Sequence record: MZ574432.2
Length of the DNA: 64,000 nt
Direction: 5' to 3' (one strand)
Both the position numbers and the translations under genes were made by a program. Under the pieces are notes generated by a model that was not told the origin of the DNA, did not search any database, and worked only from the letters and a program-made list of their open reading frames with translations. This document shows positions 18,659 through 48,683 of the stretch, one piece after another. Numbering within the stretch: position 1 is the first letter of the stretch; each line of letters opens with the position of its first letter.

Positions 18659-19618
18659 ATGCGTGTCAGTGTTCAATGCGAGGGCTGTGGTCAAACGTTT
18701 TGCGTGAGGCCCTGCGAAGGTGGGCGTAAATACTGCACACTGGCATGTTACGACGCCCACAAGCCTTATCCGCCAAAGAAATACGAGCAGGCGGAGGTGA
18801 GGGAATTCTTCTACTACTGCGGCTCGCTTAAAAAGACCGGTGAGGCTTTCGGCGTTACAGGCGGCGCGATCGCCTATATTGTGAATAAGCATCCTAAGGT
18901 CATCCCGCTCATTCCCCTTCAGAAGGGTAGGAAGCCGCGAAAGATTACCGGCGACACTGAAAAAGAAATAGCCCGACTTTACACAGAATCCGACATACCT
19001 GTTTCGGAGTTGTGTCGGAAGTTTGATATAGATTATCAGTATCTTAAGAGAATTAGAGAAAGACTGGGTCTTAACAAGAGGTCCGCCGGTTCTGTTGACT
19101 GGGCTTCGTTAGTCTCAGATATCAAGGACGGAGCTACGTGGACATCAGCAGCCGAAAGATACGGCACCAATAGAAGTGCTATTCACAAATATATTAAGGA
19201 ATATAACCCAGATTTACTGCCTGATCTCAGAAGAACCAAAGGACGAGAGGAAGAAATCCTCACGCTGTATAAATCTGGTATGACACTTGAAGAAGTATCA
19301 GATGCACTTGATCTTAGAGCAGGCGGTGTCAGGAAAGTGATCCTGCGCTTAGAGCCTGAGCTACTAAAACGCCCGAAACGCAGCCGCCCTGAAACCTTTG
19401 ACAATGAACTAGCTATTCGGCTATTTGCGGATGGGGATAAATCCTATCGAGCAGTGGCTGAGATAGTAGGCGCCACAGAAAACGCGGTACGCGTCTGCAT
19501 CCGGTCAAAAGCACCACACCTCATACGGCAGAACTGGGCAAAACGCAGAGGGTTCGAGGCTGCTAAGGCTGCGATCCGTTCAGTCCGGTTAGTCAACGAT
19601 TTCAAAGGTTCCTCCTGA
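18659..19618 (+). CDS. Zn-finger plus tandem HTH DNA-binding protein, low-GC island
   Basis: CEGC..F...RKYCTLAC; about five HTH-like repeats; AT-rich codons unlike flanks. Confidence 0.7.
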   Translation: MRVSVQCEGCGQTFCVRPCEGGRKYCTLACYDAHKPYPPKKYEQAEVREFFYYCGSLKKTGEAFGVTGGAIAYIVNKHPKVIPLIPLQKGRKPRKITGDTEKEIARLYTESDIPVSELCRKFDIDYQYLKRIRERLGLNKRSAGSVDWASLVSDIKDGATWTSAAERYGTNRSAIHKYIKEYNPDLLPDLRRTKGREEEILTLYKSGMTLEEVSDALDLRAGGVRKVILRLEPELLKRPKRSRPETFDNELAIRLFADGDKSYRAVAEIVGATENAVRVCIRSKAPHLIRQNWAKRRGFEAAKAAIRSVRLVNDFKGSS

Positions 19619-33609: not shown

Positions 33610-34656
33610 ATGGGCGACTGGAAGCAACAGCTTGTGGCCCAGGCCAAGGGCGCGCCCTTAGACATTGAGCCGCTGGAGGCTTCGCCGCCCAGGCCGCCCG
33701 CGCCGCAAACCTTGCGCCGGCGCCGCCCGATCCTGACCGACGCCGAGCGCCAGATGCTCGGGATCGGCGTGGGGCCGACTCCAAAACAACCCGGCGGCAA
33801 GCGGAAGTTCAAGACGCCCCGCACCCGTCCTTTCAAAGGTCCGCGCGCCTGCGTGCTGTTGGTCAGGGAGGCCAAGGTCCTGAATAAGAAACCGCGCATG
33901 GCCCGTCTGCGAGGCCAGAAGGTTCCGATGCTGGCGACCCGCACGCCGTTCAGCTACGACAAGGCCATGGACATGCGCGAAGCGGGAGTCTCGGTGCTGA
34001 ACATCGCCAAGGCGCTGGATGTATCGCCGCTGGCGATCCGGGCCTTCGTCAACACCTATGCCAGCCATGTCAAGGCCACGCGAGGCTCCAACCTTTCCGA
34101 AGAGGTTCAAGACCAGATCGTCAAGGCCTATGCGCAAGGCGGCGTCACCCAGGTCCAGGTGGCCAAGCAGTTTGGAGTCAGTGGCCCGACGGTCTGCAAC
34201 GTCATCCGGCGCCGCGCCCCTGGCTTAGGCAAGTCCATGCGGCGCTATGCCTTCCACCCCAATCGCAGACTGGACATCGAAGTGGCGGCTGCGGCCTACG
34301 AGGCTGGTCAGACCTTGCGCGAGATCGCCAAGGCCCAAGGGGTGTCACAGAACGCCGTCTACCTGAACCTGAAGACCTATGCGCCACAGGTGATGGAGGC
34401 AAAGCGCCTGGAGCGCGCCGCTGCTAAGGCGGCCAAAGAAGCACGGAAGCAGGCCAAGCTGAAAGCCAAGGAGCCAACCCTGGGCTATACCTTCAATGCG
34501 ACCCTGGCGATCCGCACCCTGCGCGCCGGCGGCTCGCGCCAAACCGTGCTCGACTATTTCAAGATCAGTCGGAGCACGCTGGCGCGGATGCTGAGCAAGG
34601 AAGCCCCCGACCTCTTGCGACCCAGGGTGGGCCGGCCGCCCAAAGAGACGCCGTGA
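33610..34656 (+). CDS. Four-repeat tandem HTH protein with basic N-terminus
   Basis: IAKALDVSPLAI, VAKQFGVSGPTV, IAKAQGVSQNAV, VLDYFKISRSTL. Confidence 0.75.
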   Translation: MGDWKQQLVAQAKGAPLDIEPLEASPPRPPAPQTLRRRRPILTDAERQMLGIGVGPTPKQPGGKRKFKTPRTRPFKGPRACVLLVREAKVLNKKPRMARLRGQKVPMLATRTPFSYDKAMDMREAGVSVLNIAKALDVSPLAIRAFVNTYASHVKATRGSNLSEEVQDQIVKAYAQGGVTQVQVAKQFGVSGPTVCNVIRRRAPGLGKSMRRYAFHPNRRLDIEVAAAAYEAGQTLREIAKAQGVSQNAVYLNLKTYAPQVMEAKRLERAAAKAAKEARKQAKLKAKEPTLGYTFNATLAIRTLRAGGSRQTVLDYFKISRSTLARMLSKEAPDLLRPRVGRPPKETP

Positions 34657-38034: not shown

Positions 38035-38379
38035 ATGAAGAATTTGCTCACCCCTGAGGCCGTGGCCGACCTGGATTGGATGTATCCCACCCAGCAAGAC
38101 CGCAAAGCTTTGATTTCATTCATCAATGAGTCTTTCGAAGGGACAAGCTTCGCCGACCGCATGGCGCGCGACAGTCACATCGCCGCCTTGGCGCCGAACC
38201 GCAAGACCCGCGAACACCTGCGAGCCCTCCTGCTGCGCTCCCGCCTCGGCGCGGGCCTGGGACTGAAGAAGACGCCCACGCGGACGGCCATCCTCTGGCT
38301 CTTGAACCATCACGCGCCCCTGGCCGCAAGCCTGCACCTAGAAGCGATCGCGCTGGCGCGGGTTTCGCCCCCTCAGTAG
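38035..38379 (+). CDS. Hypothetical protein
   Basis: ORF after promoter. Confidence 0.6.
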   Translation: MKNLLTPEAVADLDWMYPTQQDRKALISFINESFEGTSFADRMARDSHIAALAPNRKTREHLRALLLRSRLGAGLGLKKTPTRTAILWLLNHHAPLAASLHLEAIALARVSPPQ

Positions 38380-38459
38380 CGGAGTGTGCCGCGCGAAGCG
38401 CTCGCGTTATGGTTTTTCAAAGTTGCCTGACGGTTGTCGTATCAACAGGTTTTTCTCGC

Positions 38460-38771
38460 ATGACGAGTCCCAGGTCCCGCCGTTCAGGCACGCCCCCGCG
38501 AGGCGATCTCTCACGCCCTAAGTCCTCCAGCCATCGCTATGTGATCGACCAGCGCTGGTACTCCACCGAGGAGGTCCATGGCCTCATCGTCCAGACCCTG
38601 CCCAAGCTGAAACCCAACGCCCGCACCTGCGACCAGTTGGTCCTGCATCTGGGCTCGGCCGATCTCTCCCAGGGCACGCTCAGCCGCATGCTCAAAACCC
38701 TGGCCAAGAAGGGCGTGCTCGATCAAGTCGCCCACGGCCGCTACACCCTGCCCGCCAAGGACCCCCGATGA
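38460..38771 (+). CDS. Winged-helix DNA-binding protein
   Basis: LSQGTLSRMLKTLAKKGVLDQVAHGRYTL. Confidence 0.7.
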   Translation: MTSPRSRRSGTPPRGDLSRPKSSSHRYVIDQRWYSTEEVHGLIVQTLPKLKPNARTCDQLVLHLGSADLSQGTLSRMLKTLAKKGVLDQVAHGRYTLPAKDPR

Positions 38772-39964
38772 CCGAGCCCAAGAAGAGAGGCCGCCGCGCC
38801 GGCGAGAGCAACAAGACCCGCTACATCAACGGCGTGGCCTTCGAGACCCGCGAGTTCGTCAACAAGCTGATCGAGACCATCAACGCCCTGCGCGATCTGC
38901 CTGTCCCCACCGTCCAGGGCATCGTCGACCTGTGGGCCGATCCCTACTGGACCAGCACCGAGGGCGACCTTGATCTGCGCCGCTGCCTGCATCGCATGCA
39001 CCAGCAGGGCAACCTGATCCGCGAGACGCGCGGCGTCTACCGGGTGTCGGACGTCCTGCACCTGCGCGCCTCCCATGATCTGCAACTGATCGCCGAGCGC
39101 ACCTTGCGCGACCTGGGGGGGTTCGCCTCGGCCAAGACCCTGCGTAGGGCCATGGGCTATTCGGCCGAGGAAGCCGTCAACGCCAACCTCTGGCACGCCC
39201 TGCGCCTGGAAGGCTCGCGCATCCGCCGCGACTTCCGCGAGCGCTACCTTTACAACCTCCCCGCCGAGGACCTGCGCAACCTCGTCCTGGCCGGCAAGTG
39301 GGCGCTGCCCTACTATCGCGGGGTCTATCTGGGCATGGCCAGCGCCGAACCGGGCGAGCGTCCCTGGCGCGCGCTCGTTGATCTGCACATCACCGCCGTC
39401 GGGTCGGCCTTCCAGACCGCGCGGCTGATCTGCGGCCTGGAGATCGAGGACCTGATCGCCCTCAAGCCGAACCGCGTCGACGGCGAGAGCCCCCACGTCT
39501 ATCCCGATCTGGTCAAGGCCATCGACGCGGCGCGCTACGCCAATCCAGCCCGGCGATCGGTCAGCGAGTATCGCCGCGAGATCAAGAACAAGGTCGTCGT
39601 CGGACAGCGCGAGAACCGCAATGGCCGCCTCGTCGACGAGGTCGCCGAAATCCCGATCGAGGATCACGAGGAAAAAGCCGTCTTCGCCGACGACCTGCGC
39701 CGCGCCTTCCTGCGCTCGATCGAGAGCCCCGGCGCCGATCCTGATCCGCGCTATCTCGACGACAGCGACTATCGCTTCCTGCCGGCCGAGTTCTTCACCG
39801 CCGCCGCCGCGATCTTCAAATGCGATCCCGTCGACCTGTCCTGGGGACGGGTGGGGCCGCGCGCCGACCTCGGCTGGCATACACGACGCGACAGCCGCAA
39901 CCACGCTCAGCCCGAGTTCGAGGATGAAGACCTCACCGAAGAGGGCGATCGCCAGGAGACCTGA
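38768..39964 (+). CDS. Multi-domain DNA-binding protein (winged-helix-like domains)
   Basis: LRRCLHRMHQQGNLIRETRGVYRV wing; second helix-wing-like segment; ATGA-coupled. Confidence 0.6.
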   Translation: MTEPKKRGRRAGESNKTRYINGVAFETREFVNKLIETINALRDLPVPTVQGIVDLWADPYWTSTEGDLDLRRCLHRMHQQGNLIRETRGVYRVSDVLHLRASHDLQLIAERTLRDLGGFASAKTLRRAMGYSAEEAVNANLWHALRLEGSRIRRDFRERYLYNLPAEDLRNLVLAGKWALPYYRGVYLGMASAEPGERPWRALVDLHITAVGSAFQTARLICGLEIEDLIALKPNRVDGESPHVYPDLVKAIDAARYANPARRSVSEYRREIKNKVVVGQRENRNGRLVDEVAEIPIEDHEEKAVFADDLRRAFLRSIESPGADPDPRYLDDSDYRFLPAEFFTAAAAIFKCDPVDLSWGRVGPRADLGWHTRRDSRNHAQPEFEDEDLTEEGDRQET

Positions 39965-39979
39965 AACCCTTGGCGTGCT

Positions 39980-39996
39980 TGGCCCGAAGGGCCTTT
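39980..39996 (+). terminator. Short intrinsic terminator
   Basis: GGCCC-GAA-GGGCC-TTTT. Confidence 0.55.
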
Positions 39997-40104
39997 TAGG
40001 GGCTGCCCGGTCATGAAAAATAGACAGGTAAGACTCTTGGTGTACTGAAAGACAACAAAAAGACTAGACCTGAACAGGGGGTGGGCGGTGCAGACACGGC
40101 CTGC

Positions 40105-40303
40105 CCCTATAAGCTTATACACATACATGGTGTATTAAACGACAAGGGAACGACATACTCAGGAGCGGCGGAAAAGGTCCCTTCCCTATAAGCTTATACA
40201 CATACATGGTGTATTAAACGACATATAAAAGGTATGAGCCACAGGCTCTCACAGACATGCCGCCCTTATAAGCTACACCACATACATGGTGTATTAAATG
40301 ACA
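40105..40303. repeat. Three 40-bp direct repeats with unique 39/40-bp spacers (CRISPR-like mini-array or iterons)
   Basis: CCCTATAAGCTTATACACATACATGGTGTATTAAACGACA at 40105 and 40184 (identical), variant at 40264. Confidence 0.85.
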
Positions 40304-40833
40304 TGTTAAAGGCATCACTCCCCCACTCCACACAGGAGACAGGGCGAAGCTTTCTCACAACCACACTCCCTATCATTCTTTTTATTTATTATTAAATACA
40401 CCAATTTATCCCTCTTATAGAATAGGAAAAGAAGGAATCTTCTACTTTGGTGTAAAAAGAGTAGAGACAACCTTTGAGAGAGTGATCCCCAGCCTGCATG
40501 GTCCAGACGAAGAGACGATGAGAGGACGGCGAAGGGAGGGCGACACGATTTGCGACACCTCCCGGTAGGACGACACCGAGGGGACGATCCTGACCAGCCG
40601 ACGTCACGACACCCGACACCGCGATGATGAGTGCGCGACCGGCGAACGGAGGGCGCAGCCCGAGTGAGGTGGGAGGCGTAGCTGACCTGGACTCCTGGTG
40701 ATCGAACCGTCCTGGCTCCAGCCGCTCGATGCCGAGGTCTTCGAGGATTCTGGGGAAACTGATCCCGACCGGCGACGAGGGCGAAGCCCGAGGCGGTGGG
40801 ATGGGGCGTCGATCATGACCCATGTCGTGTTTG

Positions 40834-40862
40834 TTGACATGTGTCACGTGACGTGGCATGAA
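40834..40862 (+). promoter_or_regulatory. Promoter with GTCACGTGAC palindrome
   Basis: TTGACA at 40834; palindrome at 40843-40852; upstream of ORF 40907. Confidence 0.5.
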
Positions 40863-40906
40863 GGATTCAAGATGGTTAACGGACACCATCTTCAGGACCT
40901 CCCGAA

Positions 40907-41636
40907 ATGTTCACGCCCATCCGCGCCGCCAGCCTCGACGACCCCCGCCCCCAACTGGGCGATGGGGCTGTTCTGACCGCCGCCGTCAAGCTGGTGCTGC
41001 CCAGCTTCGTCGAGTGGACCAAGGCGCGCGGTCTGGACCTGACCGACGAGCAGATCACCTTCGCGGTGGAACTCGCGCTCAAGCAGTCCAAGACCGCCGG
41101 CGTGGATTGGGCCTGGACTTCGGCCAAGGTCCTGGAGACCGCCTTTGGCCTGCCCGGCGATGGCAAGCTGATCGCCCGCCTCGAAGCGGTGATCGCCAAC
41201 CAGAAGCTGGCCTGGGAGCGCGAGACGCGCGCCTGGGTCCTGCGCACCGGCTATCGCATCCCGGCCGACGAGCAGGAGAAGGTCGAGGCCCTGGTCGAGG
41301 GCGTGCCCGTCGTGTGGCAAGATCGTCGGCGTCTCGCGCGGCCTGGGCGTGGCCTATCTCCAGACCGAGGACGGGACCCAGACCTTCCGCATCGACGGCG
41401 AGGACATCATCGCCAACCACACCCAGGGCCGCTTTGCCCCCGAGACCCCGATCCTGGGCTCGCGCTATGAGGATGCGCCGGCCCTGGCGCTGGCCGCCGA
41501 GGCGCAGCGTCGCAAGAAGCCGGCCGGCAAGTTCGCCCAGCCGGCGAGCGATGCACGCACCCGCCAGCAACAGATCGCCGACGCCTACAAGGCCGGCACG
41601 TTCGGCGCGGACGCCGATGGTCCTGGAGCGGCCTGA
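40907..41636 (+). pseudogene. Hypothetical gene with apparent +1 frameshift near 41312-41316
   Basis: Coding bias moves from frame of 40907 to frame of 41349 at GTCGTGTGGCAAG; second frame ends TGATG-coupled. Confidence 0.6.
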
Positions 41637-45857: not shown

Positions 45858-48683
45858 GTGACCTCCGCTTCTGCTCTTGGCCTGGATTTTTCCAAGGCGC
45901 CGATTTCTCCCTATCCGCACGAGGAGCGCTCCAAGCGCCGTGAGGGCGTGCGCCGCATGCGCAAGCTCTCCGACGACGTGCGCTATTTCGTCGATCGCGG
46001 CCTTGAGCCGGACCCGACCATCGCCCAGGTCGCCAACGCCATCACCGGCGTGACCGACCCGCGCATGCAGGTCAACCTGCTCGACCAGATCGCCGACAAA
46101 ATCCAGCACGAGCACCTGGAGAAGCTCTCGGCCCTGGCCAAGAACGATTTCTCGGCCTTCTGCGAGGTGATCAGCCCCGAGGAGCCGCCCGAGAGCCCTT
46201 GGCACATCTGGCTGACCAACTTCCTGCAAGAGGTCGAGATGAGCCCCGACCTCAACAAGGTCGTGCTCAACGTGCCGCCCGGCCACGCCAAGCCCCTGGC
46301 CGACACCACCCCGGTGCTGATGGGCGACGGCGCCTACAAGCTCTTGCGCGACGTCAAGGTCGGCGACGAGGTCTGGACCCATGCGCGCCGCGCCCGGCCG
46401 GTGACGGCGGTCCATGACCAGGGCAAGCTGGCCACCGTCTGGGTCGAGACCACCGCCGGCCGCCGCGTCCAGGCCGCGCTCGATCACCCGTTCCTGGTCA
46501 AGCTCGGCGAGCGTGAGGATGGCAGCCCCATCGCCGAATGGATCAATGCCGGCGATCTGCGTCCGGGCATGGACCTTGTCGTGGCCGCCCACAGCGCGCC
46601 TTCGCTCGCCCACCTGCGCTATGACGGCGACCACACCGACTACGACGCCTTCCTGCACCGCGCCCGCATGCTCGGCTACATGGCCATCGGCGGGGCGCTG
46701 CACTGGCAGAAGTCCAAGACCCAGGTCACCCCCTCGCCGGACTTCCGCCTGTCGACCCACAAGCGCCCGCTGATGAAGGCCATCCTGTCCCTGGTCAAGA
46801 AGGACCTGGGCCACCACATGAGCGTCTGCAAGGTCTCCTCGCAGAACACCTTCGTCGCGCGCCTGGGCGTCAAGGCCTTCCGCGACCTCAACGCCGGCGA
46901 CTGGTTCACCTACGAGCCTGAGAAGCGCCGCGCCCCGCCGGCCATCTTCACCGCCTCCAAGGAAGAGATCGCCGCCTTCATCGGCGCGGCCTTCACCCTG
47001 CGCGGCGAGGTCATCCGCCGGCTCAAGGGCAAGAACCTGCGCCTCTACCATCGCTCGCAAGACCTGCTGAGCGACATCCAGAAGCTGTGCGCGACCCTCG
47101 GCGCGTTTTCCAGCCTCGACAGGGGCGATCCCGACTTTGGCGGCCGACCCTGCCTGAACCTCGACTTCGGGGCTGTGGAGGCCCTCCAGGCCGCCGGAGT
47201 GACCTTTGATGCGGAGACCGACGCTGACCTCGCCGCACAGCCGCCCAAGGTCCTGGGTCAGGCCTTCGACGCGGGGCTGGACGCGGTGGTCTCGGTCATG
47301 CCCGGCAAGAAGGCTCCTTGCCTGTGCCTGACGGTCGAGGAGGACCACAGTTTCACCGCCGAGACCCTGGTGGTCAAGAACTCCACCTACGCCTCGCGCC
47401 TGTTCGTGGCGTGGCGCCTGGGGCGTGACCCCAACCAGCGCATCATCGGCGGCGGCCACAGCCAGAACTTTGTCGAGAACGAGTTCTCCTCGAAAATCCG
47501 CGACATCGTCGAGAGCCCCGAATACCAGAAGGTGTTCCCGGCCGTGGTCATCGACCACAAGACCAACGCCAAGCAGCAGTGGAAGCTGGCCGGCTACAAG
47601 GGCCAGTACGTCGCGCGCGGCGTGGGCCAGGGCATCCACGGTTTCCGCGCCACCTTCATCTGCGTCGATGACCCCTACTCCAAGATCGAGGACGCCAACA
47701 GCCCCGTTCACCGCCGCAAGGTCGAGCAGTGGTTCGACGCCGACATCGGCTCGCGCGCCCTGCCCGGCTGCAAGACTTTCCTGATCATGACCCGCTTCCA
47801 TGGTGAAGACCTCACCAATCACCTGGAAGAGATGAATAAGGTTTTGCCGGCCGATGCACAGTGGAAGATTGTCACTGTACCTGCGATTTGTTTTGACGAA
47901 GACACTGACTTGCTAGGCCGCAAGGTCGGTGAACTTTTGTGGGATTACTATCCGCTGAGCTACTTCGTTGATAAGAAAGTACAATTTGGATTTCTGGGTT
48001 TCGCCCTCACCTACCAACAAGTCTCTTCGGCGGCCAATCCCGACAATATCGCCAGCAAGTTCAATTTCTACGATTATTTGCCTCACGAGTCGCCTGAGGC
48101 CCTGGCCCGCGCCCCCAAGGATCAGTTCGGAAGACCCCAGCCGGACCTGTCGGATTTTTACCGGCGCACGATCGTCTCGGTCGACACCGCCGCCAAGACC
48201 ACCGAACGGGCCGACTACACCGTCGTCCAGGTCTGGCGCGAGGATTTCAAGGGCAACCACTATCTGGTCCACCAGGACCGCCGGAAGGTGGAATTCAACG
48301 ACCTGATCGCCATGATCGAGGGGCCGGCCCTGAAATACCGGGCCGATCAAATCCTCGTCGAGGACAAGGGCTCGGGCACTCAGTACCTGCAAAATCGCGG
48401 CGCCACCGACAGCCAGAAGCGTCAGGCCCCCGCGCCCCTGGTAGCGGTCAATCCCGGCGTGGCCGGCAAGGAGTTCCGTTTCGACGGCGTGACCCCGATG
48501 ATCACCGCCGGCGAGGTCTGGCTGCCCAAGAACGCCCCCTGGATCGAGCAGCTTCTGGTCGAAATCGGCCAGTTCCCCGACAGCGCCCACGATGACCAAG
48601 TCGACGCCCTGTCGCAGTACCTCAACCACGCCAAGAAGAACCGCACCCGCTACGGCAGCCGCAAGATCACCAAGCATACCTGA
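45858..48683 (+). CDS. terL: Terminase large subunit with intein
   Basis: Walker A PPGHAK|ST split by intein; Walker B FICVDDP; nuclease VSVD, VEDKGSG, HDDQVDA. Confidence 0.95.
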   Translation: MTSASALGLDFSKAPISPYPHEERSKRREGVRRMRKLSDDVRYFVDRGLEPDPTIAQVANAITGVTDPRMQVNLLDQIADKIQHEHLEKLSALAKNDFSAFCEVISPEEPPESPWHIWLTNFLQEVEMSPDLNKVVLNVPPGHAKPLADTTPVLMGDGAYKLLRDVKVGDEVWTHARRARPVTAVHDQGKLATVWVETTAGRRVQAALDHPFLVKLGEREDGSPIAEWINAGDLRPGMDLVVAAHSAPSLAHLRYDGDHTDYDAFLHRARMLGYMAIGGALHWQKSKTQVTPSPDFRLSTHKRPLMKAILSLVKKDLGHHMSVCKVSSQNTFVARLGVKAFRDLNAGDWFTYEPEKRRAPPAIFTASKEEIAAFIGAAFTLRGEVIRRLKGKNLRLYHRSQDLLSDIQKLCATLGAFSSLDRGDPDFGGRPCLNLDFGAVEALQAAGVTFDAETDADLAAQPPKVLGQAFDAGLDAVVSVMPGKKAPCLCLTVEEDHSFTAETLVVKNSTYASRLFVAWRLGRDPNQRIIGGGHSQNFVENEFSSKIRDIVESPEYQKVFPAVVIDHKTNAKQQWKLAGYKGQYVARGVGQGIHGFRATFICVDDPYSKIEDANSPVHRRKVEQWFDADIGSRALPGCKTFLIMTRFHGEDLTNHLEEMNKVLPADAQWKIVTVPAICFDEDTDLLGRKVGELLWDYYPLSYFVDKKVQFGFLGFALTYQQVSSAANPDNIASKFNFYDYLPHESPEALARAPKDQFGRPQPDLSDFYRRTIVSVDTAAKTTERADYTVVQVWREDFKGNHYLVHQDRRKVEFNDLIAMIEGPALKYRADQILVEDKGSGTQYLQNRGATDSQKRQAPAPLVAVNPGVAGKEFRFDGVTPMITAGEVWLPKNAPWIEQLLVEIGQFPDSAHDDQVDALSQYLNHAKKNRTRYGSRKITKHT
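46293..47381 (+). mobile_element. Intein (363 aa, Pro1...Asn, +1 Ser) with degenerate LAGLIDADG domain
   Basis: PLADTTPV block A, DHPF block B, CLCLTV..HSF block F, VVKN|S block G. Confidence 0.9.

Follow-up and report, generated by a model that had tools for sequence, protein, structure and literature searches.

Plasmid centromeres are often tandem direct repeats beside the gene for their binding protein, the 43-bp repeats of F sopC being an example, and the Rep proteins that bind plasmid iterons are built on a plan of two winged-helix domains. In phage T7 the primary origin has an AT-rich segment preceded by two tandem promoters, and mini-arrays of clustered regularly interspaced short palindromic repeats (CRISPR) carried by phages are known in other systems. 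Which of these does a set of three repeats in a Caulobacter phage most resemble? The repeats lie in a 64,000-nucleotide stretch of record MZ574432.2 (the window in what follows, its position 1 being record position 248,001), which megablast identifies as Caulobacter phage BL47 (Bertelyvirus; linear, 326,794 bp), within the 942-bp gap that separates gp497 (38768-39964, + strand) from gp499 (40907-41470, +). The locus appears to be a cis-acting array of candidate protein-binding sites tied to gp497. As to its role, the best reading, one held tentatively and put somewhat below an even chance, is that of an iteron-like array which is bound by gp497 and marks an origin of replication.

Research on the Caulobacter cell cycle has long relied on the phiCbK-like and giant Caulobacter phages as tools. 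Gill et al. 2012 (PMC3556154) describe those related to phiCbK as having a T7-like DNA polymerase, a helicase that lacks a primase domain, and no single-stranded-DNA-binding protein; a term search of that paper for an origin or an initiator protein returned no mention of either. These phages persist as replicating, stably inherited episomes for which an origin has been postulated, not located (Mohammadi and Ely 2025, PMC12195562). No description of the present locus was found in the literature searched.

A repeat search gives three direct repeats that start at 40103, 40182 and 40262, spaced 79 and 80 bp apart. The 40-nt cores of the first two (40105-40144 and 40184-40223) are 100% identical and the third (40264-40303) has the same base at 34 of 40 positions, so the three repeats of about 40 bp described in an earlier sequence-only reading of the window are real, as is the palindrome TATAAGCTTATA that it saw in repeats 1 and 2. 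Exactly three copies of a 19-nt core, ACATACATGGTGTATTAAA, are present in the window, versus none expected (100 shuffles). Of the 29 occurrences of the heptamer TGGTGTA in the 326,794-bp genome, seven are in the 480-bp locus (Poisson P ~1e-11; 0 of 20,000 shuffles). The full units are longer than the cores, unit 1 running from 40094 to 40172, unit 2 from 40173 to 40252 and unit 3 from 40253 to 40336, all on the + strand. An nhmmer profile made from 12 units, taken from four phages, recovers them (E = 7e-12 for unit 1) and matches nothing else in the 326,794 bp; since its matches are confined to one locus, a general promoter family was rejected as an explanation of the units. Two partial copies flank them. 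The degenerate one that had been noticed upstream is at 40036-40057 (+; CTTGGTGTACTGAAAGACAACA; 68% identity to the reference copy, and recovered also by pattern match). The inverted one downstream, seen at first as 40392-40403, can be extended to 31 nt at 77% (40373-40403, − strand; TGGTGTATTTAA...) and corresponds to the AT-rich 3' half of a unit. It sits in what had rightly been called an AT-rich island: the 300-bp window of lowest GC content in the whole BL47 genome (0.383, at record position 288187) falls within the array locus.

What lies between the cores is not what it had seemed. The 39- and 40-bp lengths of the supposed spacers stand, but their supposed unrelatedness does not: the sequences after repeats 2 and 3 start alike (TATAAAAGGTAT and TGTTAAAGGCAT), those preceding repeats 1 and 3 are also similar (CAGACACGGCCTGCC and CAGACATGCCGCC), and these shared ends align with conserved unit blocks of other phages. 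Hairpins had been reported as well, and they exist, but they are weak and no better than those of shuffled sequence (-2.8 to -4.9 kcal/mol as DNA, z from -0.4 to -1.7; for folds of single units -0.3 to -7.3 kcal/mol, z from -1.7 to +0.7). RNAalifold finds no consensus base pair across the 12 units, and the proposal that single-stranded structure is under selection thereby comes down to one variant repeat. No tRNA or tmRNA was found in the locus, and Rfam gave no match at E <= 1 over 39500-41500; a tRNA or tmRNA, a known RNA family and a conserved unit hairpin were accordingly rejected.

With a repeat of some 40 nt alternating regularly with 39-40 nt of other sequence, the locus does superficially look like a CRISPR array, and a mini-array without cas genes, its transcript processed to guides by a host or co-infecting CRISPR-Cas system, had been one of the two identities offered for it. 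That identity would require a good deal that is not there. Over 401 nt the array does not differ at a single position between three independent isolates, BL47, RB23 and J4, so the comparison discloses no spacer turnover. In the diverged relatives C2, CcrSC, CcrBL9 and L013 repeats and 'spacers' have changed together with the copy number still three, and over the diverged relatives as a whole it is two or three. A blastn search with 40030-40430 gives nothing but self-matches among 50,697 phage records and nothing at all among 72,556 plasmids, leaving the 'spacers' without a protospacer in either collection. An 18-nt repeat core searched against 185,579 species genomes gave four single matches, a chance level, none of them an array and none in Caulobacter. 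The absence of a cas gene, already remarked on from the letters, holds among all 608 annotated features of the genome and in Pfam scans of 16 neighbour proteins, no genome-wide search with Cas-specific profiles having been part of this. Together with 'spacer' ends that are conserved parts of the units and the lack of a conserved repeat hairpin, this refutes the guide array as far as sequence goes, and we leave it no more than the barest residue of probability.

The arrangement is a family trait. Ten lineages, BL47, C2, CcrSC, CcrBL9, the metagenome contig L013, phiCbK, Brevundimonas phage Bajun, Colossus, L025 and L024, share an order in which a gene of the gp497 family is followed by two or three direct units 63-89 bp apart, the unit sequence being specific to each lineage. 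They span four named phage genera in addition to unclassified phage and metagenome contigs. The four Bertelyvirus lineages of the phage collection (BL47/RB23/J4, C2/C1, CcrSC and CcrBL9) each have a large gap after the gp497 homologue with exactly three tandem units in it, and these units differ yet align in common blocks: ACAC-GGC..CCCC, AAAGCTA, ATATGGT, TTAAA and CATAAAGG. L013 has three units, spaced 80 and 79 bp and with a core of its own. Two units 76 bp apart are found both in phiCbK (Shapirovirus), with an inverted copy, and in Bajun, with inverted copies; in Colossus, whose gp497 homologue is distant, the spacing of the two units is 77 bp and an inverted copy is again present. Of the other two distant homologues, that of L025 precedes three units at a spacing of 74 bp, likewise with an inverted copy, and that of L024 a pair of direct copies and a pair of inverted ones. 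The AT-rich half of the unit is thus present as an inverted copy, within an AT-rich stretch, in 8 of the 10 lineages (CcrSC, CcrBL9, phiCbK, Bajun, Colossus, L025 and L024 besides BL47); none was found in C2, and L013 has only 11-12 nt of it. Two further distant homologues fall outside the scheme, L023 having no gap after the gene and L015 a large repeat-bearing gap upstream of it. Scans of IMG/VR for more relatives returned only one partial gp499 match and CcrSC itself.

That the units belong with gp497 is indicated by how they vary. Unit identity is 65-78% within a lineage versus 35-52% between lineages, so the units evolve in concert. Up to about 38003, and from 40337 onwards, BL47 and C2 share 89-91% identity (89% at the resumption); between these points they are almost unalignable except for a short 81% patch at 38356-38513. 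The diverged block runs from the 3' part of gp496 through gp497 and the three units, and it ends right after unit 3. Over it, gp497 is 28.8% identical to its C2 counterpart versus 48-49% to those of CcrSC and CcrBL9, and unit similarity follows the protein rather than the flanks (0.49 for BL47 and CcrSC, 0.38 for BL47 and C2). On these alignments gp497 and the units have been swapped together, as one cassette.

The protein in question has 398 amino acids, with two N-terminal winged-helix domains (about residues 25-98 and 100-172) and a C-terminal part that has no structural match and ends in a conserved DPVxLS motif. Its AlphaFold2 model (pLDDT 81.6) finds winged-helix domains only, with VIA-align Z up to 8.3 and Foldseek E >= 0.03, and most of these matches are to transcription regulators: IdeR, MarR, IclR. 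At the sequence level there is a weak match to AbiEi_4 and a match to phrog_10876, to which no function is assigned; the phiCbK homologue is CbK_gp311. Assignment to a known initiator or regulator family was rejected, the matches being to generic winged helices and plasmids holding no homologue. It is the likely binder of the units. Ahead of it, gp496 (38409-38771, +; 120 amino acids), the 3' part of which is within the variable cassette, has a weak winged-helix signature in the form of weak Pfam helix-turn-helix matches (IclR, MarR and others, residues 72-118), all under the curated cut-offs, and a small gene occupies this position ahead of the gp497 homologue in every relative examined. Just past the gp497 stop codon, read directly from the sequence, is a terminator-like hairpin, GGCCC-GAA-GGGCC then TTTT (39981-39997, +), which a consensus terminator scan missed because it has only four T; Colossus has a rho-independent terminator annotated at the same relative position.

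On the other side of the units the AT-rich stretch (40365-40470), in the lowest-GC region of the genome, holds, besides the inverted copy, a -10-like TATAGAAT (40416-40423), a purine-rich tract, GAATC (40435-40439) and a TGGTGTA at 40448. A -10-like TATAG, TATGG or TATTG with a purine-rich tract occurs at the equivalent position in BL47, C2, CcrSC, CcrBL9, L013, phiCbK, Colossus and Bajun, and the arrangement is kept across the four named genera wherever the stretch was read. The next thing after the purine tract in BL47, CcrSC, CcrBL9, Bajun and Colossus is a GANTC methylation site. The arrangement at 40416-40440, with its GGTAGAGAAGAG-like purine tract, has its counterparts at the equivalent places of L002, L003, L004, L011, L012, L013 and L026. 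A DnaA box was considered at about 40407 (TTATCCCTC); by eye it has 6 of 9 positions, it is not kept in relatives, and it was dropped.

Is this, then, where the phage begins to replicate? The iteron origin had been the other identity offered, and the anatomy fits it, though an array for the control of transcription explains the same data almost as well. An origin is favoured because the sites are at a single locus, in direct and inverted copies, by easily melted DNA and next to a co-varying gene for a protein with two winged-helix domains, in phages whose literature has a gap just there. As we picture it, gp497 monomers or oligomers would load onto the direct units and the opposed inverted copy, and the loaded complex would bend or wrap the DNA and open the adjoining AT-rich stretch, the most easily melted DNA of the genome, possibly aided by transcription from the -10-like TATAG into a structured GC-rich leader; the T7-like DNA polymerase and helicase of the phage would then start replication. 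Binding, melting and the start of replication at this place are what we infer. If one goes further, gp496 and gp497 with the array may constitute the replicon of the Dolichocephalovirinae, in which a new family of tandem winged-helix initiators acts on long composite iterons about 80 bp apart, serving both the lytic start for a T7-like polymerase without a recognised primase and the persistence of phages of 200-330 kb as episomes, with lineage-specific pairs of initiator and origin exchanged as modules; the whole of this is less likely than not.

Several observations weigh against an origin. The conserved part of a unit, about 45-55 bp, and the spacing of 63-89 bp far exceed those of classical iterons of 17-22 bp, so that the cluster of direct repeats with an inverted copy, though at a single locus, is atypical in its dimensions. 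The adjacent AT-rich element is not fully independent evidence since it is largely the inverted copy of the unit's AT-rich half. The neighbouring tandem winged-helix gene co-varies with the units, but gp497 has no detectable relation in sequence or fold to known initiators past a generic winged helix, and no homologue was found on 72,556 plasmids. The replication genes of BL47 are at 131-157 kb, far from the array, which is situated where transcription units meet. Cumulative GC skew, a check suggested with the original proposal, has no switch at the locus, though it follows gene orientation throughout and is therefore uninformative as a signal of origins. Finally, in six lineages 2-43 nt separate the end of the inverted copy from the conserved -10-like element downstream of it, a position that would look like that of a promoter operator or an activator site.

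These points make a transcription-control region the main rival. The units and the inverted copy would be operator or enhancer sites for a dedicated regulator, gp497, which would activate or repress a promoter in the AT-rich stretch (TATAGAAT, 40416-40423) driving the leader and the operon from gp499 to the terminase genes, regulator and sites being exchanged as a specificity cassette in the manner of lambdoid immunity regions. We regard this as quite possible while short of probable. It would account for the constancy of the -10-like element and purine tract at an equivalent place in the eight lineages named above, for an inverted copy that stops 2-18 nt short of the -10-like element and overlaps the place of a -35 in BL47, CcrSC, CcrBL9, Colossus and Bajun, for the terminator-like hairpin (annotated in Colossus) that closes the upstream transcription unit, for the regulators among which most winged-helix matches of gp497 are found, and for some 360 nt downstream that are conserved, apparently non-coding and equipped with a structured element. 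The promoter itself is harder to find. No sigma-70-type promoter is called in 39500-41200, and the Caulobacter housekeeping consensus TTGACGS-N10-14-GCTANAWC, reportedly that of Malakooti et al. 1995, in a form which may not be exact and at a threshold of at least 11 of 14 positions, is matched neither inside the units of seven lineages nor in the AT-rich stretch of any lineage scanned; a promoter of either type in the units was rejected. It is also unusual for a temporal switch to have sites at one place in 327 kb, structural and lysis genes being elsewhere; three long units of fixed number and spacing exceed the needs of a simple operator; and in phiCbK the inverted copy is some 43 nt upstream of the -10-like element. 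The two functions can be combined, since an origin might be primed or activated by a transcript, as those of T7 and T4 are.

Transcription might alternatively issue from the units themselves, either as tandem small-RNA genes, each unit of about 79 bp having a promoter of its own and giving a short RNA, or as stacked promoters that feed one long leader transcript. All units are oriented as the downstream genes are, and their blocks over about 50 bp (CCCC, AAAGC, ATGG, TTAAA, ATAAAGG) fit a promoter with its start region, much as T7 has tandem promoters at its primary origin. We nevertheless think this improbable: there is no promoter-like match, consensus RNA structure or tRNA or Rfam match, no + strand terminator comes after the units, none of the other intergenic regions of BL47 has the motif, and both the inverted copy and the co-variation with gp497 are left unexplained. 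A smaller chance still attaches to a centromere-like partition site, where gp497 bound to tandem repeats would give the episome a handle for segregation, as with sopC or parC. Phages of the subfamily have been reported as stably inherited episomes (PMC12195562), a role for which such a handle would be apt, but neither gp497 nor any of 16 neighbour proteins has a ParA-type ATPase or ParB-like domain recognised by Pfam, plasmids have no gp497 homologue, there are only two or three units, and BL47 was isolated as a lytic phage. Set against these alternatives, a gp497-bound origin is still the reading that we would carry forward.

Beyond the AT-rich stretch a conserved GC-rich segment (40470-40833, +) aligns among the Bertelyvirus lineages as conserved islands with many indels that are not multiples of three, and it is probably non-coding, either a leader RNA or a set of DNA sites. 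Two copies of a GC-rich 46-nt hairpin element, with the pattern CGCGACCGGCGA..GGGC-GNA-GCCC..GAGGTGGGAGGCG, are found in it by nhmmer (40632-40685 and 40766-40815). BL47 has four copies in all, every one on the + strand, the other two being outside the locus at record positions 152933-152984 (L009 2933-2984) and 196992-197040 (L009 46992-47040); one of the outlying pair is between convergent genes adjoining the DNA helicase gene and one is inside the gp300 coding sequence. C2, CcrSC, CcrBL9 and L013 have two copies each, downstream of their units. Twelve copies from five lineages give a small stem-loop with 3 compensatory pairs, and the copy beside the helicase gene folds at -46.5 kcal/mol (z = -3.75). 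The element matches no Rfam family, and a metagenome scan with it gave no match; it may act as structured RNA or as a site in single-stranded DNA. On the opposite strand of the same region is an annotated coding sequence, gp498c (40392-40889, −), with no Pfam or PHROG match. It is not annotated in CcrSC or CcrBL9, where the open reading frame is fragmented, and frame-breaking indels run through the alignment, on which grounds gp498c is probably not a real gene.

Immediately ahead of gp499 is a block (40834-40879, +) consisting of TTGACA (40834-40839), a perfect 10-bp palindrome GTCACGTGAC (40843-40852) and ATGGTTAA (40872-40879), which is nearly invariant in BL47, C2, CcrSC and CcrBL9 and, from its sequence, looks like a regulated promoter with an operator. 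ATGGTTAA resembles a single CtrA half-site; no full TTAA-N7-TTAA site is present in the intergenic region of seven lineages, and CtrA boxes were rejected. The published clusters of CtrA sites lie elsewhere, in the terminal repeats (Mascolo et al. 2022, PMC9437464). The first gene downstream, gp499, belongs to phrog_11118 and opens the run of genes towards both terminase genes, small and large. It is shared throughout the subfamily, and a tblastn search yields homologues from 49 phage records, among them those of Colossus, CcrPW, and phiCbK-like and Brevundimonas phages.

The annotated terminal repeats of BL47 are 30,174 bp each. The right one starts at window position 48621 (record 296621), within the large terminase gene at its 3' end, as was shown experimentally for the terminal repeat of phiCbK (PMC3556154), and the array is 8.2 kb upstream of it. 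A pac site was set aside as an identity of the array, packaging starting at that boundary 8.2 kb downstream, and so was an attP-like site, the only annotated tyrosine recombinase gene being 130 kb away. Each terminal repeat has at its inner end, by annotation, a tandem series of about six copies of a three-gene unit some 885 bp long (genes of 195, 171 and 192 nt; L005 25366-29984, L006 9986-14604). At the inner end of the left repeat there is a low-GC patch (L005 30070-30590; 0.417) with repeated motifs GGACATTTGCCGGACAT and CTAAAAATTTT(T)ATAAAAA, which may be part of a boundary for packaging termination. Elsewhere in the window, the second-lowest-GC patch (18700-19600; 0.41) is coding, with repeated helix-turn-helix-like segments, and at 18.7-19.5 kb repeats of the array kind are not present; its composition is foreign to the phage, so that it may be a recently acquired gene. 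The 340-residue product of gp487 (33634-34656), annotated only as hypothetical, strongly matches HTH_23 (8e-18) and HTH_7 (3e-15), helix-turn-helix domains of the resolvase or transposase type.

What is gained by all this? The origin question now has a concrete target: a single, subfamily-wide locus in which a lineage-specific cassette of gene and sites lies in the most meltable DNA of the genome. Should it prove to be an origin, the iteron scheme would gain a new form, served by a new family of proteins; should it prove to be a control region, it would provide a new family of DNA-binding proteins with their cognate sites, a switch heading the packaging operon and a natural set of orthogonal protein-site pairs. 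Either way a false CRISPR lead is removed, and a probably spurious gene call, gp498c, is brought to notice.

It remains to set the locus beside its nearest described counterparts. Like the iteron replicons (pSC101 repA/ori, F ori2/RepE, R6K gamma ori/pi, RSF1010 oriV), the BL47 locus has direct repeats and an inverted copy by an AT-rich segment, next to a gene for a two-winged-helix protein, sites and protein making up one specificity unit, and the hairpin-forming priming signals near the RSF1010 origin bring the 46-nt elements of BL47 to mind. It differs in having only two or three units, 63-89 bp apart with about 45-55 bp conserved versus 17-22 bp for iterons, in being carried by a 327-kb phage, and in a protein without detectable homology to Rep_3-type or other initiators and without relatives on plasmids. 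A further difference is that the inverted copy does not overlap the promoter of gp497, as the gene is upstream of the array.

Phage origins offer other parallels. Repeated sites for an initiator, a putative one in BL47, that adjoin an AT-rich segment and are confined to one genomic location are shared with lambda ori/O, SPP1 oriL/G38P and P4 ori-crr/alpha, and among lambdoid phages the DNA-binding part of the initiator and its sites likewise co-vary and are exchanged as a module. In lambda and SPP1, however, the repeats are inside the initiator gene, whereas those of BL47 are downstream of gp497, past the terminator-like hairpin; gp497 has no sequence similarity to O, G38P or alpha, and no helicase loader or primase gene adjoins it. 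The T7 primary origin (1.1A/1.1B) and the MotA-dependent T4 oriF and oriG are alike in having tandem direct elements upstream of an AT-rich segment and a factor site, putative in BL47, at the -35 place above a -10-like element, and the DNA polymerase of these phages is T7-like, in a system with no recognised primase (PMC3556154). Against this likeness, no phage RNA polymerase is annotated in BL47, its units match no promoter consensus tried, and the T7 origin has no dedicated adjacent DNA-binding protein of the sort that gp497 would be. The units are longer and more widely spaced than the 17-bp operators of lambdoid immunity regions, gp497 is not divergent from its sites, and no lysogeny module is adjacent; yet in both a gene for a DNA-binding protein and a cluster of sites have been swapped as a cassette between otherwise near-identical phages.

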